This document shows positions 13,956-19,087 of a DNA stretch of 64,000 nt, one piece after another; the stretch's first letter is position 1, and the number at the start of each line of letters is the position of its first letter. Below the pieces are notes generated by a model. The model was given only the letters and a program-made list of their open reading frames with translations, did no database searches and had not been told where the DNA came from. The stretch covers positions 157,096 to 221,095 of IMG/VR virus record IMGVR_UViG_3300045999_010033; one strand, given 5' to 3'. The position numbers and the translations under genes were made by a program.

Positions 13956-14390
13956 TTACCAATTTATATTATCTACTTTATTTTTTATAGTTGTTGCAAC
14001 TCCACGTTCTTTTGCTTCTTCGTTCATTGCCTTTGTTAACACCTTTCTTAACTCACGTATAAGTTCATCGTAATTTATATCAGTATTATTTTCGTAAGAT
14101 GTAAGTTGTGCCTTTGTTTCTGGTAGTTCCATTATATAATCTATAAGGTGTGTTCCTGCACCATTTTTTTCAACATATTTATCAATTTTTTTTAAAAAAC
14201 TATTTGTGTTACTAAAGTTTTTTAATATTTTTTTAAGTGCCCTTTGAACTTCAACACTTCTTCCGTTATAATATGCATCTATATTATCTGCAAGTTTACT
14301 AAACAAACCGGTTACCCAAGCTAGTATCAGTATTCCACCTAAAATAGCCACCAATGAAAATTCGTTCAATTGTTTTTTATTTGTTTTCAT
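13956..14390 (-). CDS. Putative head cargo protein with LNE site followed by a hydrophobic helix
   Basis: Likely start ATG 14390: MKTNKKQLNE|FSLVAILGGILILAWVTGLF. Confidence 0.55.
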   Translation of the reverse strand: MKTNKKQLNEFSLVAILGGILILAWVTGLFSKLADNIDAYYNGRSVEVQRALKKILKNFSNTNSFLKKIDKYVEKNGAGTHLIDYIMELPETKAQLTSYENNTDINYDELIRELRKVLTKAMNEEAKERGVATTIKNKVDNINW

Positions 14391-14391
14391 T

Positions 14392-14922
14392 TTATTTGAA
14401 ATATATTTCTTCAAAGTGAAGTATATCCAATAGGTTTGTTGGGTCTATTAATTGTGCCGCATTTAGAAGGTCTGAAAATTCTGTTATTGATTCGAATTGT
14501 CCTTTTCTAAATTCTTCTAGAAAATCAAACGTTGTAATATCTTTTTGCATAATCTCAACTGAATCCGCATTGTATTTTGTGAATAGGTCGTATTCCAATG
14601 CGTAAGATTTATTTACTATATCAATCAATCCTGTGAAATTAATGTTTGGTTTTACGGCCGGCATAGTTGGATTTATATTCCAATCTACAAGGTATTGTTG
14701 AAGTTTTTCGGCATGTCCCAATTCATTGGCTGCTTCTTTTTCAAAGAATGCTGCAGCATTGTTATATCCAACACCTTTGCACCAATTCGATGCAATACGA
14801 TAAAAGAAGTGTGCAGTATATTCATCTACCAATCTATCGTTGATAATCTTTACCGATGCTGGGTTAAGCTCTTTTGGATTTAGAGCCTTTGCCATTGTCA
14901 ATGCTTTGATATTTGTTGCCAT
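14392..14922 (-). CDS. Ferritin-like protein
   Basis: DEYTAHFFY...FFEKEAANELGHAEKLQQYL...ALE...GQFESITE matches non-haem ferritin ferroxidase-centre spacing. Start reassigned to MATNIK. Confidence 0.8.
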   Translation of the reverse strand: MATNIKALTMAKALNPKELNPASVKIINDRLVDEYTAHFFYRIASNWCKGVGYNNAAAFFEKEAANELGHAEKLQQYLVDWNINPTMPAVKPNINFTGLIDIVNKSYALEYDLFTKYNADSVEIMQKDITTFDFLEEFRKGQFESITEFSDLLNAAQLIDPTNLLDILHFEEIYFK

Positions 14923-14926
14923 AAAC

Positions 14927-15184
14927 TTAATGTAATTTTTGTTTTTCTCCTTTAATATAAGAAATAAATGCATTCATTGATGATGAATCTCTAAATACTA
15001 TTTGTTTCTTATCTTTATCGTAACTTTTTATATCTCTTTGAATTTGTGCCAACGCAGGATTTTGATACATTGTAGATAGTGTTTTCCATACTCTTTCCCA
15101 TACTTGCGGGTTTTGAATTGTTAGTGTACTATCGGTTGCCCCATCATTTGCGTTATAATCAAATTCTTCTTTTATTTTTTTTTT
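14927..15184 (-). CDS. Start-less 85-codon open frame (KKKIKEEFDYNAND...GEKQKLH*), the -1 frame continuation of the 15172-15588 gene
   Basis: Open from the A10 run (15175-15184) to TAA at 14927-14929, 4 nt before the ferritin ATG. No ATG/GTG/TTG between the upstream in-frame TGA and the run. Confidence 0.6.
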   Translation of the reverse strand, partial: KKKIKEEFDYNANDGATDSTLTIQNPQVWERVWKTLSTMYQNPALAQIQRDIKSYDKDKKQIVFRDSSSMNAFISYIKGEKQKLH

Positions 15185-15588
15185 AGTCCAAGCCTTTCTT
15201 GCATTTGCTCATGTGAAATATCGGCGATTTCAAAATATCTTCCGAGAACGTGTCCCATATCTTCATATAGGGCTTCAAGTCTTTGTTCTTGCTGATGTGC
15301 TATACTTGATTCTTTTTCAAACTTTTCTTGTAAGGATTTTAATTCTTTCATATTACGTTTGATAGTAACACGGTCAAACCAATCTCCACCCTCTCTCAAT
15401 GTGTATTCTTGTGCAGCATCTGCAATAGCACCAAGTGTTTCGGCAATTTGACGAATATCAGATTTACGATTAATACTTTCTCTATGTGTGCCGAATGTAG
15501 ATATTATTTCCAAAAAGTGTTTTTTAACTTCGGAAGGTAATTGTTGAAACTCTTCGGATTCTTTCAGTAAATCTTTTAATCGTATCAT
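15172..15588 (-). CDS. Putative internal head protein with MIRLKDLLKE leader
   Basis: ORF track; shared leader; ends CTA AAA AAA AAA TAA. Confidence 0.7.
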   Translation of the reverse strand: MIRLKDLLKESEEFQQLPSEVKKHFLEIISTFGTHRESINRKSDIRQIAETLGAIADAAQEYTLREGGDWFDRVTIKRNMKELKSLQEKFEKESSIAHQQEQRLEALYEDMGHVLGRYFEIADISHEQMQERLGLKKK

Positions 15589-15609
15589 TGTTTATATTTA
15601 ATATATTAA

Positions 15610-16164
15610 TTAAAACTCATCATTACCGTACGCCTTAATAAGTTGCATCAATCCATCGTAAGTTTTAGAAGAACCCTCTGGCTTATATTCACCATATCTA
15701 CTATTAAACTTTACTTTGACGGAATCTTTATCAGGATGACTTAACCAAACATTTTGTGTTGTATTTGATGTTTTTACAACAACTCCATTTTTATATTTTT
15801 TTGTATCAAACGCTTTCCACTCTCGGCCGGCTGGCTTTGGCTGTGATTTTGGTCTTTCAAATTTTTGGTATGGCTTATCACCCTTTCCGTACTCGCCGGC
15901 TGCAAATTTATTAACAAGATTATTTAAACCGGTTACATCACCACGATATCCATCTGCGTTTGCAGGAGTTCTCCATCTATCAGTTGCTGCTCCATCTTTT
16001 TTGAACTGCATAGTTCCATATTTTGGATGGCTTAAAGTTACATACTTATCGGCGGTTCTTACTGATACCCCATTTTTGAAATTTAATACACTTTCATTAA
16101 TGGTGGAGATTTTTTTAATCTCCTCACGAATTATTTGTCTTAATTGTGATACTGTGATTTTCAT
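15610..16164 (-). CDS. Putative internal head protein (MKITVSQLRQIIREE leader) with duplicated internal module
   Basis: FKNGVSVRT..YVTLSHP and YKNGVVVKTS..VWLSHP; GLNNLVNKFAAGEY and GLMQLIKAYGNDEF. Confidence 0.6.
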   Translation of the reverse strand: MKITVSQLRQIIREEIKKISTINESVLNFKNGVSVRTADKYVTLSHPKYGTMQFKKDGAATDRWRTPANADGYRGDVTGLNNLVNKFAAGEYGKGDKPYQKFERPKSQPKPAGREWKAFDTKKYKNGVVVKTSNTTQNVWLSHPDKDSVKVKFNSRYGEYKPEGSSKTYDGLMQLIKAYGNDEF

Positions 16165-16190
16165 TGTTTTTTTTTTTGATTAATAAAAAT

Positions 16191-16658
16191 TTATTTTTTA
16201 TGAGATTGGTATCCTTTATTTTTCATCCAATTAGTTAATGCGTATGGATTATCAATGCCCGGCTTATCTTTCATTGCTTTAACGGTTCCTTCCCATCCTT
16301 CGGGTGCCTTTTCGGAAATATTTTCTCCTCTAAATCCACTCATTCCATCTCCTTTCGTATTTCCTTGAAACCCAGCACCTACATCATTTTTTTTTTGACC
16401 GCCGAATGCATCTGCTTGCTTAATCTTTTGGATAGCCCTCATTACTTCTTGCTTATCCATATTAAGGCCATCAATTATTTTTGCAATTACAAGTACTTCT
16501 TTTTTACGAGGAAGATTGTAAGTTTTTAATTGAGATGTAAGTTTTTCTAAAAATCGGTTTACAGCCGTTGGAAGATTAACATCCAAATCATCAAGTGCTT
16601 CTTTTTGAATTGGTTTTTTATTTTCTTTTATAAGGCCTTTTAGTTTTATTGGTTTCAT
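16191..16658 (-). CDS. Putative internal head protein (IKLKGLIKE leader; C-terminal ISE|KAPEGWEGTVKAMK module)
   Basis: ORF track; leader and internal xxE sites. Confidence 0.6.
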   Translation of the reverse strand: MKPIKLKGLIKENKKPIQKEALDDLDVNLPTAVNRFLEKLTSQLKTYNLPRKKEVLVIAKIIDGLNMDKQEVMRAIQKIKQADAFGGQKKNDVGAGFQGNTKGDGMSGFRGENISEKAPEGWEGTVKAMKDKPGIDNPYALTNWMKNKGYQSHKK

Positions 16659-16678
16659 ATTTTTTGATTATTATTTTA

Positions 16679-16951
16679 TTAGTTAACAACTATATCCCAA
16701 TACTTAGAAGTTTCTTTTTTTGGCATTGATGTGTTTGTATATTTTGGACTAAGACTGTATATACGACGTCCTCCATTAATAGTACGAGAATATGTATAGT
16801 ATTTCGGATTTGGTAGATCATTTGTTCCATCAACTTCAAGTGGTAGCATGCCTCGTTTACGTCTTTGCCTATGTAGCGGATTATGCTTTTCGGCTTCATT
16901 CAGTTTTTGTATTCTATTAGGAATGAGTTTCATTAATTGCATGCTAATCAT
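16679..16951 (-). CDS. Small basic putative head protein (KLNE|A site)
   Basis: ORF 19 nt downstream of an ATATTTATA motif. Confidence 0.5.
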   Translation of the reverse strand: MISMQLMKLIPNRIQKLNEAEKHNPLHRQRRKRGMLPLEVDGTNDLPNPKYYTYSRTINGGRRIYSLSPKYTNTSMPKKETSKYWDIVVN

Positions 16952-16982
16952 TTTATTTTTCTTTATATAGTATAAATATACG

Positions 16983-17573
16983 TTAGTTCAATTCAACAAT
17001 TATTTCACGCATTAGGTCTTGTGCTTTACACCACTTACCACATTCGTCTGCAATTTTCTGCCATTGCTTACTCTCATTCATTGGTGCCATAAATGCTCCA
17101 TGCGTAGACGGGTTCGATACGAAGTCCCAGCCAACCAATTCGAAGTCGTCTTGCACCATTACCGTGCCATCCCTTTGCTCATTAACTGAACCAAGTCCAC
17201 GTGAACTAATACCAAGACGTATATTATTTTTAAGCAATTCTTTTAAGATATTGCCCGATGGTGTTGAAAGAATTTCTACCACTCCACAAACATCATCCCC
17301 TTCCCACCATATTTCACGAATATTGTGTGATACATTTTTAAGCTCGATTACTGGAGAATCCGGATGGTCTAATTCACCAAGTGCACGTCTTTCCTTAATC
17401 AATTGCTTATATTTTTCACACTCACGCTCTAATATCTCTTTTGGATAACGGCGATTGTTTTGATTGGGTGCACCTGCTCTTTGCAAAACGCCTTTAACAA
17501 GAAAAGTACCATTAGATTCTTCTTTGAGTTTTGCTTCGAATAGGTGGGTTTCTATTAATAGTTTTTTATTCAT
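16983..17573 (-). CDS. Prohead maturation protease (T4 gp21-like)
   Basis: NNRRYP, ALGELDHP, NVSH, LGISSRGLGS, DFVSNPST motifs. Confidence 0.93.
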   Translation of the reverse strand: MNKKLLIETHLFEAKLKEESNGTFLVKGVLQRAGAPNQNNRRYPKEILERECEKYKQLIKERRALGELDHPDSPVIELKNVSHNIREIWWEGDDVCGVVEILSTPSGNILKELLKNNIRLGISSRGLGSVNEQRDGTVMVQDDFELVGWDFVSNPSTHGAFMAPMNESKQWQKIADECGKWCKAQDLMREIIVELN

Positions 17574-17574
17574 T

Positions 17575-17769
17575 TTACATTCTTAATCTACCTTCAGACT
17601 TTGCTTGATATGCTTTGTCTACGGCATTAAAAAATTTCTTTTTTTCTTCGTCACTCATTGAGTTAATATCTTTCCCAGTTTTATCAAGCATAGTTTTGAA
17701 CAATTCTTGATAATCCTGCTCTTCTTTAATTACTTCTCTAACGAGTTCTTTTAGTTGTTGTAAGTTCAT
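17575..17769 (-). CDS. Small prohead core-like protein (64 aa)
   Basis: LKELVREVIKEE, MSDEEKKKFF; sits between portal and protease like T4 gp67/68. Confidence 0.55.
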   Translation of the reverse strand: MNLQQLKELVREVIKEEQDYQELFKTMLDKTGKDINSMSDEEKKKFFNAVDKAYQAKSEGRLRM

Positions 17770-17781
17770 TTTATTGTGGTT

Positions 17782-18192
17782 TTATTCTGATATTTTTCTA
17801 ATATGTTGTTCTAACTTAATCAACCTTTCTTTTATTTTCAAAATGTTTCCATTTGTACGTTTCCAAAATTGGTCATTAGATACTCCGTTTTCTTGCTTCA
17901 ATTTACCATACCAATTTAGAAATTTTTCCATTTCTGCCAATTGCTTATTGATGTTAGAAACGCCTTTACCGATTTTTCGGTGAGCAGGGATATCTTCATT
18001 TTTTAGTTCTAACCAACGATTTTCTTTTACAACGGTATACCCAGTTAGGTCAGCTTGTTGTTTCGCACTTTGCTTTGTATCTCCTCTTTTTTTGAATGCG
18101 TTTGGTGACTGGTATCCTTGAACGTTCCCTGTCACATTCATTTCTCTTACAACCTTTCTTATAAATTCTTTTAATTTACTTTTGTGTTGCAT
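17782..18192 (-). CDS. Hypothetical head-associated protein
   Basis: VVRE|MNVTGNVQGYQSPNAF and VKE|NRW sites. Confidence 0.55.
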   Translation of the reverse strand: MQHKSKLKEFIRKVVREMNVTGNVQGYQSPNAFKKRGDTKQSAKQQADLTGYTVVKENRWLELKNEDIPAHRKIGKGVSNINKQLAEMEKFLNWYGKLKQENGVSNDQFWKRTNGNILKIKERLIKLEQHIRKISE

Positions 18193-19048
18193 TTTTCAAT
18201 TCTTTTATTAGTTCGTATGCCATCATAAGCGCGGATACGTGTTGCTCTTTAACACGTTTATTCTGCTTTATTTTTTTTATCTGCCCTATCGTTTCTACTA
18301 ATTTTATTTTTGTAACTTTATCGGTAATCTTCTTTCCAATTTCATTTAGGGATTGTGTAATTTTATTTACTTCACTTTGAATGTGATTTGAAAAGCCGGA
18401 ACTATTAGTCATTCCATTAATATATTCTCGTAGTAAAACCTTTTGCTCATTACTTAGGTCTTTATACTTTGTATTAAAACTTTCTATTAAAATTTTATAC
18501 GAAAGAGCCCTTACAGTTTCATCTTGTTTTTTGAATTGTTCCAATACGGCATCTTTTATTTTTGCATCTTTATTCTGTATTGATTTATTTATTATGTTTT
18601 CTGCAATTGTAAATCTTGAAGATACCACATCGGTTGGATCTAAAATTTCGGATTCATTTATTGATTCAAAAATTTTATAAATTGATGCAAGAACTTTGTA
18701 GTTTGAAACCGATGATTTTAATAAATCTTCTATATTATACGATTCTCTTATTTTTTTTACTAAATTATATTTTTCTTTTGTCAATTTAGCTTCATCAAGA
18801 CGTTTGCGTGCTTCACAAACGGTATCAATAAACTTTTCTGCTTTTGCTTCAGAATTATATTTTTCGTTTATAAGATACTGATATAATTTTAATTCTTTTG
18901 AAAGTTCTTTTTTAGAATTAAAAAATTCTTGTAGGATTTTTTCTGCTTTAGATTTATTTTCCGACATAATTTCGGAGGTGATTTGTCTAAGCAGTAATTC
19001 AAAAATGAATCCTGTATTTTTGAACTTAGAATGTTTAATTTTTTTCAT
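18176..19048 (-). CDS. Hypothetical helical protein downstream of portal
   Basis: ATG 19048 MKKIKHSKFKNTGFIFELL; preceded by ATATTTATA motif. Confidence 0.65.
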   Translation of the reverse strand: MKKIKHSKFKNTGFIFELLLRQITSEIMSENKSKAEKILQEFFNSKKELSKELKLYQYLINEKYNSEAKAEKFIDTVCEARKRLDEAKLTKEKYNLVKKIRESYNIEDLLKSSVSNYKVLASIYKIFESINESEILDPTDVVSSRFTIAENIINKSIQNKDAKIKDAVLEQFKKQDETVRALSYKILIESFNTKYKDLSNEQKVLLREYINGMTNSSGFSNHIQSEVNKITQSLNEIGKKITDKVTKIKLVETIGQIKKIKQNKRVKEQHVSALMMAYELIKELKNATQK

Positions 19049-19087
19049 CAAAGGGATAATTTATCTCTTTATAAATATATTTATTGA

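Follow-up and report, generated by a model that had tools for sequence, protein, structure and literature searches.

A gene in the head module of an uncultured T4-like phage from lake water ends in a run of ten adenines (A10) directly followed by its stop codon, and the -1 frame continues through this run into an open frame without a start codon. We refer to the gene as the head and to the start-less frame as the tail. The best explanation is that a conserved -1 recoding event makes a head-tail fusion, which is targeted to the prohead by the leader of the head and cut at an [I/V]xE site. We consider this reading likely (probability of about 0.7), and no direct RNA or protein evidence supports it. 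The anatomy of the locus, its conservation over deep divergence, the purifying selection on the start-less part and the leader-bearing stand-alone variants are shown below, and the fold of the tail is predicted by a model. The occurrence, rate and mechanism of the shift, as well as packaging and cleavage, are inferred.

In the proposed mechanism, the 138-aa head would be a prohead component with a capsid-targeting-type leader (MIRLKDLLKE/, the slash marking the predicted cut here and below), and the majority of translation would terminate at the TAA behind its C-terminal lysine run. A minority would enter the -1 frame at the A10 run, with the RNA polymerase adding one A or the ribosome slipping back on A_AAA_AAA by the stop, and would yield a head-tail fusion of ~220 aa. 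The leader of the head would bring the fusion into the prohead core, where the S77 protease would cut IKE/E and free a folded tail domain of 79 aa inside the capsid. In related phages, a tail gene that starts at an ATG of its own and brings its own leader copy would lead to the same outcome.

Architecture of the head module

The window, by which we mean the whole 64-kb stretch of DNA that was analysed, belongs to a 221-kb IMG/VR contig from lake water. The order of the module is portal, small proteins, a T4-type prohead serine protease of family S77 (16983..17573, minus strand; PF03420, 3e-29; phrog_207, 5e-54), four small genes, a ferritin-like gene (14392..14922, minus strand; PF00210, 2e-19), an acidic scaffold-like protein and a gp23-type capsid protein. 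Judged by the capsid protein, the closest relatives in culture were Microcystis phage Mel-JY01 (54%) and, at 53%, Flavobacterium phage immuto. When the region was searched as DNA against the genomes of cultured phages, nothing was returned.

The head gene (15172..15588, minus strand) encodes a conserved head-module protein of 138 aa, which we propose as a carrier. Its N-terminal leader MIRLKDLLKE (15559..15588, minus strand) resembles capsid-targeting leaders and closes with an L-x-E site, and its core extends to about GRYFEI (residue 121), after which comes the linker ADISHEQMQERLGLKKK. On the minus strand, the 3' end of the gene reads GGA CTA AAA AAA AAA TAA. The A10 run, the proposed shift site, lies at 15175..15184 (minus strand) and is read in the 0 frame as (CT)A AAA AAA AAA, with the in-phase heptamer A_AAA_AAA; the 0-frame stop TAA (15172..15174, minus strand) follows immediately 3'.

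In the -1 frame the sequence continues (AAA AAA AAA) ATA AAA GAA GAA TTT, which encodes IKEEFDYNANDGATDSTLTIQNPQVWER...KQKLH before a stop. The tail (14927..15175, minus strand) begins IKEEFDYN and comprises 82 codons and a stop, or 85 codons with the three lysines, and it has no start codon. The frame opens at 15208, 11 codons ahead of the ATA, and contains no ATG, GTG or TTG before the ATG at 15070. This internal ATG (15068..15070, minus strand) is Met36 of the tail, and ORF finders begin a 47-aa ORF (MYQNP...) there. The tail stop (14929..14927) is followed by GTTT and then by the ferritin ATG at 14922, 4 nt past the stop, and the tail frame occupies 245 of the 249 nt between the head stop and the ferritin ATG. 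Stops are expected at an estimated ~8% of random codons at the composition of the window, and on that basis an open frame of 82 codons exceeds chance expectation. The A10 run is one of three A/T runs of at least 10 in the 64-kb window. The fusion is predicted to read ...LGLKKKIKEE... at the junction, where IKE/E (15164..15175, minus strand) is a predicted prohead-protease site at the start of the tail. Cleavage at this site is inferred; a cut behind IKE would make EFDYNANDGATDSTLTIQNPQVWER, which lies upstream of Met36, the new N-terminus of the tail.

An earlier note on this DNA had already described the gene end CTA AAA AAA AAA TAA and the start-less -1 frame, and both held when the sequence was checked, as did its statements that the frame stops 4 nt before the ferritin ATG and fills a gap of 245 nt. 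Its count of 85 codons holds if the three lysine codons are included, with 82 left after the run.

In tail-less relatives, the ferritin gene starts 3-14 nt after the head gene. Several of these are close relatives, so the tail is a lineage-specific insert of 245 nt. In relatives (L003-L080), the head is followed either by this ferritin of 176 aa or by a protein of 123 aa that begins MEQLASLLLHSRTQAH, occasionally with a TTG start. In Mel-JY01 (L104, 5345-5572), a gene annotated as ribosomal protein S21 (RpsU) directly follows the head homologue, in the slot of the tail and ferritin. A low-depth contig from lake sample X4 joins 14925 to 15227, with the tail and the last head codons skipped or replaced, which we read as a co-occurring strain without the tail module.

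Authenticity of the A10 run

Homopolymers are error-prone, and it could be argued that A10 is an assembly or sequencing error, the true genome having A11 and thus a plain in-frame gene of 220 aa. The evidence against this consists of contigs rather than raw reads. The run was identical in IMG contigs from two metagenomes, the second of which contributed two further contigs, one of them carrying a flanking SNP. Logan contigs from two other lake samples spanned the run with 0 gaps (14300-15390 in sample X3 and 14912-15364 in sample X4), and no indels across the run were listed in the Logan contigs of those samples. In the window lineage, the run was uniformly A10 in DNA contigs. Contigs of one RNA run (X20) flanked the A10 on either side and none spanned it; only contigs were available for this run.

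All contigs of a sister lineage (L095-L098) from four JGI metagenomes also had A10, even though flanking synonymous sites differed. Other lineages had A9G or A11 with different flanks, yet every offset was -1. Taken together with the agreement among the IMG and Logan contigs, this all but excludes the error explanation. It is very likely that A10 is not an assembly error, although this rests on assembled contigs only and a minority of A11 molecules remains possible. A scan of viral sequences with a degenerate DNA pattern of the junction matched just three known contigs; for metagenomes the pattern was too loose, and the matches returned were chance matches only.

Conservation of the junction across lineages

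Homologues of the tail were collected by an exhaustive HMMER search of 1.84 billion representatives and a profile search of 5.8 billion sequences, after which the contigs were fetched and the junctions were read. The tail was matched only as 'proteins' of 44-92 aa, and no long in-frame head-tail fusion was found in either the 1.84-billion-representative or the 5.8-billion-sequence search. Apart from the locus of the window's own phage, the tail profile had no hits in viral contigs, and among JGI metagenome contigs it had none at all. Reading of the junctions defined ten tail lineages, eight with a start-less -1 frame and two with a separate gene. The tail is thus rare, with about 10 lineages compared to at least 562 head loci.

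Among the start-less lineages, the window (tail IKEE..), L095-98 (ITEE..) and L088/89 (IKEE..) have an A10 run and a head that ends in GLKKK and a stop. L084 has an A10 run, a head end of GLKKKEK and a stop, and a tail beginning (RK)VAEE... The run is A11 in L087, where the head ends in GITEKKK and the tail begins IKEA.., and A9G in L099/100, where the head ends ATA AAA AAA AAG TAA and the tail begins VNEE... Two lineages of one clade (L102/103 and L092-94) have runs of 5-7 A, a head ending RLGE(K/R)K.SKKK and a stop, and a tail beginning (V)IKV... The offset was -1 at the lysine run in 8/8 start-less lineages and in-frame in 0/8. The 0-frame stop abuts the lysine run in 7/8 of them and comes two codons later in L084. 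In every lineage, the tail stop and the ferritin ATG either are 1-5 nt apart or overlap; the start-less tail ORF overlaps the ferritin gene by 17 nt in L088 (3131-3147) and L089 (2530-2546).

The two remaining lineages have no run, a head without the linker, and a tail that is a separate gene with its own ATG. In L085/86 (protein P0002) the head is 124 aa long and the tail has the leader MLKLKTLLKKYIKE/E, whereas in L101 (protein P0008) the head is truncated by the contig and the leader is MIKLKDLLFEVKE/Y, i.e., MIKLKDLLFE/VKE/Y. The stand-alone tail proteins have 88-92 aa, and MLKLKTLLKKYIKE and MIKLKDLLFEVKE are near copies of the head's MIRLKDLLKE. The IKEE at the end of the P0002 leader aligns with the IKEE at the window junction.

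Tail identity to that of the window ranged from 82% down to 38% (40-82% for the A9G/A10/A11 branches). In the tail tree, the A9G/A10/A11 lineages occupy at least four deep branches, at 0.4-1.2 changes per site, and the short-run lineages (L102/103 and L092-94) form a fifth, shallower clade. The tree is star-like and does not resolve whether the stand-alone or the recoded form came first, and it would be compatible with a single origin of all recoded lineages.

Selection and predicted fold of the tail

Selection was estimated from Nei-Gojobori counts over tail codons 1-35, which contain no possible start, with dS of at least 1. The comparison of the window with L095 gave 13 synonymous and 12 non-synonymous changes and a dN/dS of 0.15; dN/dS was 0.26 between the window and L084, and 0.09 between L095 and L084. 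With dN/dS at 0.09-0.26, the start-less codons 1-35 are therefore under purifying selection. Strain SNPs from other samples, read in the tail frame, comprised four synonymous changes and the conservative changes K>R and N>S, with one more synonymous change in L082. Read in the other two frames, these SNPs give a stop or radical changes.

With an alignment of 10 sequences, AlphaFold2 predicted the tail to be a compact beta-beta-alpha-alpha-beta-beta-alpha domain (pLDDT 83.7, pTM 0.71). Strands at 7-20 and a helix at 23-38 lie upstream of Met36 with a pLDDT near 89, and the start-less first 35 codons make up half of the predicted fold. Foldseek found nothing significant in the PDB for the tail model (best E 0.026, TM 0.40), and the ESM Atlas provided no usable lead for the tail.

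These results bear on the possibility that the tail is translated without any shift. Translation would then begin at the internal ATG, giving 47 aa, or at some non-canonical start codon, or it would result from termination-reinitiation at the stop of the head. In favor of this, Met36 is invariant, gene callers give ORFs of 44-74 aa with ATG, GTG or TTG starts, and no clear Shine-Dalgarno sequences exist in these genes, which weakens start prediction; candidate starts would be ATA or GTA at the junction and, in some lineages, GTG or TTG. However, Met36 is equally invariant in the stand-alone proteins of 88-92 aa, where it is internal, which means that it is not necessarily a start codon. The codon at the junction varies (ATA, AGA, GTA) and is unusable as a start in L084 and L099, and the GTG and TTG sites that gene callers chose in L092 and L102 are at different alignment positions. 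A leaderless product would also miss the targeting leader that the stand-alone versions have kept. Because the part before Met36 is conserved, under purifying selection and included in the predicted fold, the 47-aa MYQNP product cannot be the whole story; according to the model, it would be half a domain. We consider translation without a shift unlikely.

A second possibility is that the tail is a dead remnant, a formerly in-frame or stand-alone gene that was inactivated by a 1-nt loss or deletion and is decaying, with any read-through being accidental. Most relatives lack the tail, a co-occurring strain appears to be tail-less (X4), and a stand-alone form exists, all of which could fit such a history. 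However, no stops or indels were found in the tail frame of the eight lineages despite saturated synonymous sites. The low dN/dS of the start-less part, the confident fold and an offset that is always -1 and always at the lysine run also speak against decay, and this explanation is very unlikely.

A third possibility is that the role is foremost regulatory, the recoding rate setting ferritin translation through coupling at the tail stop, which shifted ribosomes alone would reach, with the peptide being secondary. The tail stop is adjacent to or overlaps the ferritin ATG, the head stop of tail-less relatives is 3-14 nt away from it, and there is a precedent in spa13, where slippage alters spa32 expression (PMC5009743). 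However, the sequence and fold of the tail are conserved and the tail also exists as a stand-alone, leader-bearing gene, which argues that the tail protein itself matters. A mainly regulatory role is unlikely. A cargo role and ferritin coupling are compatible, and coupling may be a secondary role.

The proposed carrier, packaging and cleavage

In coliphage T4, internal proteins reach the prohead core by means of an N-terminal leader of ~10 residues, the capsid-targeting sequence (CTS). Cleavage by the gp21 protease occurs behind L/I-x-E, and cargo that is fused to a CTS-bearing protein is packaged and then cleaved (PMC9026906, PMC3012670). Most small genes between portal and capsid in the window (13956-19051) begin with leaders that end in [LIV]xE within the first 8-24 residues, such as MKPIKLKGLIKE, MKITVSQLRQIIRE and MNLQQLKELVRE. 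Judging from these leaders, the window may encode many protease-processed prohead proteins. The S77 protease (16983-17573) is the presumed enzyme for cuts at [L/I]xE sites, which is an inference.

The junction is of the [IV]xE/E type in the six long-run lineages (IKEE, IKEA, ITEE, VAEE and VNEE). In the L092/L102 clade, an LGE site is located in the head linker, upstream of the shift. The V-x-E junctions of L084 and L099 deviate from the L/I-x-E rule of T4. The simplest reading, itself inferred, is that the tail has to get into the capsid, for which it would use its own leader or ride as a passenger on the head.

Head relatives were confirmed at 562 loci in viral contigs, whereas the same kind of search located the tail in no phage but the window's own. 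A head homologue lies directly 3' of the prohead protease in Microcystis phage Mel-JY01. Pfam and PHROG searches found no family for the head and none for the tail. With the head profile, no relation to T4 gp68, T4 gp22 or sequences of the PDB was seen, and BLASTP and hhalign comparisons with gp68 and gp22 gave nothing; T4 internal proteins (IPs) and gp67 were not compared directly. Head homologues share the core to GRYFEI and the linker to RLG[LI]x(E) and diverge beyond it, where they have an immediate stop, a short basic or Cys-rich tail, or an in-frame module of 20-100 aa. The C-terminus of the head is thus a hot spot, which is consistent with, and possibly explained by, a carrier that takes C-terminal cargo behind an LxE site.

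The features shared with T4 IPI-III, Alt and engineered CTS/IPIII fusions are short L/I-x-E leaders, a gp21-type protease and highly variable cargo. The Pfam and PHROG searches gave no sequence similarity to T4 IPs, none to gp68 was found either, and the resemblance is functional and architectural only. The fusion here would be natural and arise through recoding, with a conserved 138-aa protein as carrier in place of the 10-residue peptide of the T4 CTS.

The earlier note had proposed that slippage yields a minor fusion of about 220 aa, packaged through a shared leader and then cut free, and had listed what would refute it. Of the refutations, A11 is countered by contigs from independent assemblies, which give A10 and not A11 (without read-level fractions); homologues that are always in-frame fusions are countered by the absence of any such fusion among those found; and production of the internal-ATG product alone is countered by the selection and fold upstream of Met36. 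Its suggestion that homologues might keep the A-run, the stop and the -1 ORF held in eight lineages, two of them with short runs of 5-7 A. The shared leader and release gain indirect support from stand-alone leaders like that of the head and from IKEE at the same alignment position; packaging and cleavage themselves are inferred. The minor fusion is supported by comparative evidence, whereas its production, its sub-stoichiometric amount and a ribosomal or transcriptional route are inferred at most.

Possible mechanisms of the proposed shift

An in-phase A_AAA_AAA is present in the window, L084, L087, L088 and L095, and A_AAA_AAG is present in L099 and, inside the overlap, in L102; the only in-phase heptamer of L092 is G_AAA_AAG. 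Six lineages have a run of at least ~9 A at the frame junction (A10, A11 or A9), and the L092/L102 clade has A5 to A7. Bacterial RNA polymerases slip at runs of at least 9 A, and A_AAA_AAG and A_AAA_AAA are known -1 sites (PMC5009743). Folding of 70 nt upstream and 87 nt downstream in eight lineages revealed no conserved stimulatory hairpin or pseudoknot. A weak 4-bp CAAG..CTTG stem is present and is encoded by conserved residues. Stimulators are not obligatory in phage frameshift cases (PMC5009743), and the 0-frame stop that abuts the run (7/8) could serve as a pause.

The length of the run alone is weak evidence, because AAA accounts for 77% of the lysine codons in these genes and a KKK end will often produce a long A run without selection for slipperiness. 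Long A runs are also tolerated in coding sequence, since a second A10 sits in frame in the gene at 16191-16658. A10 tracts gain and lose bases readily. Given this mutability, the fact that all lineages are one A short with the downstream frame kept argues that the -1 offset is selected.

The long pure runs may favor some transcriptional slippage, while the short-run clade, the in-phase heptamers and the adjacent stop may favor a ribosomal slip, perhaps in the P site while stop decoding is awaited. Both routes fit and would give the same fusion except for the number of lysines, and the choice between them remains unresolved.

Similar to the tail assembly chaperone gpG/gpGT of lambda and the capsid protein 10A/10B of T7, the window has overlapping 0/-1 ORFs in a virion-assembly module, from which a short, predominant protein and a minor trans-frame one with a C-terminal extension would be made. 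The arrangement likewise persists in phages that have diverged, and stimulatory structures are absent from some of the known phage cases (PMC5009743). However, the site in the window has the prohead protease gene on one side and the scaffold and capsid genes on the other, whereas the known sites precede the tape-measure gene or fall within that of the major capsid protein. A G/GT tail assembly chaperone, for which a position just upstream of the tape-measure gene and chaperone homology would be expected, does not fit the site. Slippage would take place on a long A run that directly adjoins the stop, and the extension is a discrete domain, predicted to be folded, behind a protease site, which is a separate gene in sister lineages.

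Known cases of transcriptional slippage at A/T runs of at least 9 (Thermus dnaX, Shigella spa13/mxiE, IS elements and the poly(A) 'corrections' of endosymbionts) resemble the present one, with its A9-A11 at the frame junction and its AT-rich genome, and one added A in the mRNA would give the fusion (PMC5009743). In contrast, no RNA heterogeneity was seen here, where no RNA contig spans the run, and the runs of 5-7 A in L092/L102 fit ribosomal slippage better. The heptamer A_AAA_AAG of Escherichia coli dnaX occurs identically and in phase in L099 and L102, and the window has A_AAA_AAA. In E. coli dnaX, however, the shifted product is shorter and strong stimulators flank the site (PMC5009743), whereas here the shifted product would be longer and no conserved stimulator was seen.

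Implications

Tail chaperones and major capsid proteins supply most of the known cases of recoding in the structural genes of phages, and the context here would be the loading of capsid cargo. In the literature searched, no paper linked frameshifting with capsid-targeting leaders in this sense. Proteins carried in capsids include the anti-defence proteins of T4, and the class is poorly understood outside model phages. If our reading is true, recoding controls the identity and the dose of the proteins that the capsid carries into the host. The three states of one domain (frameshift fusion, own leader, absent) offer a natural experiment. Gene callers systematically mis-annotate the tail module as ORFs of 44-74 aa.

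A bolder reading, which we hold to be as open to rejection as to acceptance, is that a group of freshwater T4-like phages doses a small, exchangeable cargo domain by a conserved A-run recoding. The carrier C-terminus behind a conserved LxE would be a general docking point, to which different phages have added modules in-frame, by frameshift or as leader-bearing genes of their own, with the protease releasing the cargo. If true, this would be a natural counterpart of engineered T4 CTS-fusion packaging. A conserved carrier with a modular C-terminal docking site could be used for packaging proteins into the capsids of non-model phages.

Other A/T runs and a shared C-terminal module

All three A/T runs of at least 10 in the window lie within 1.2 kb (15175-16396), among leader-bearing head genes. 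The second A10 (16387-16396) is in frame inside the 155-aa leader-bearing gene 16191-16658 (minus strand; GGQKKND). Adding or removing one A there would lead to an immediate stop (after QKKK or QKKMM), and slippage would add an N-terminal product of 91-92 aa beside the full-length protein, a layout like that of Thermus dnaX. The third run, A11 at 16167-16177, is just upstream of the ATG at 16164.

The C-terminus of gene 16191-16658 (16191-16310) is a module of ~38 aa, KAPEGWEGTVKAMKDKPGIDNPYALTNWMKNKGYQSHKK, located behind ISE/K. The same module, in the form KAPEGWEKTVKAMKDEP..GYKSHKK, is an in-frame C-terminal extension of head homologues elsewhere (L021, L024, L029, L033, L036 and L044), where it lies behind RLGLQE/K. 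We read it as a mobile peptide module that is shared by different carriers.
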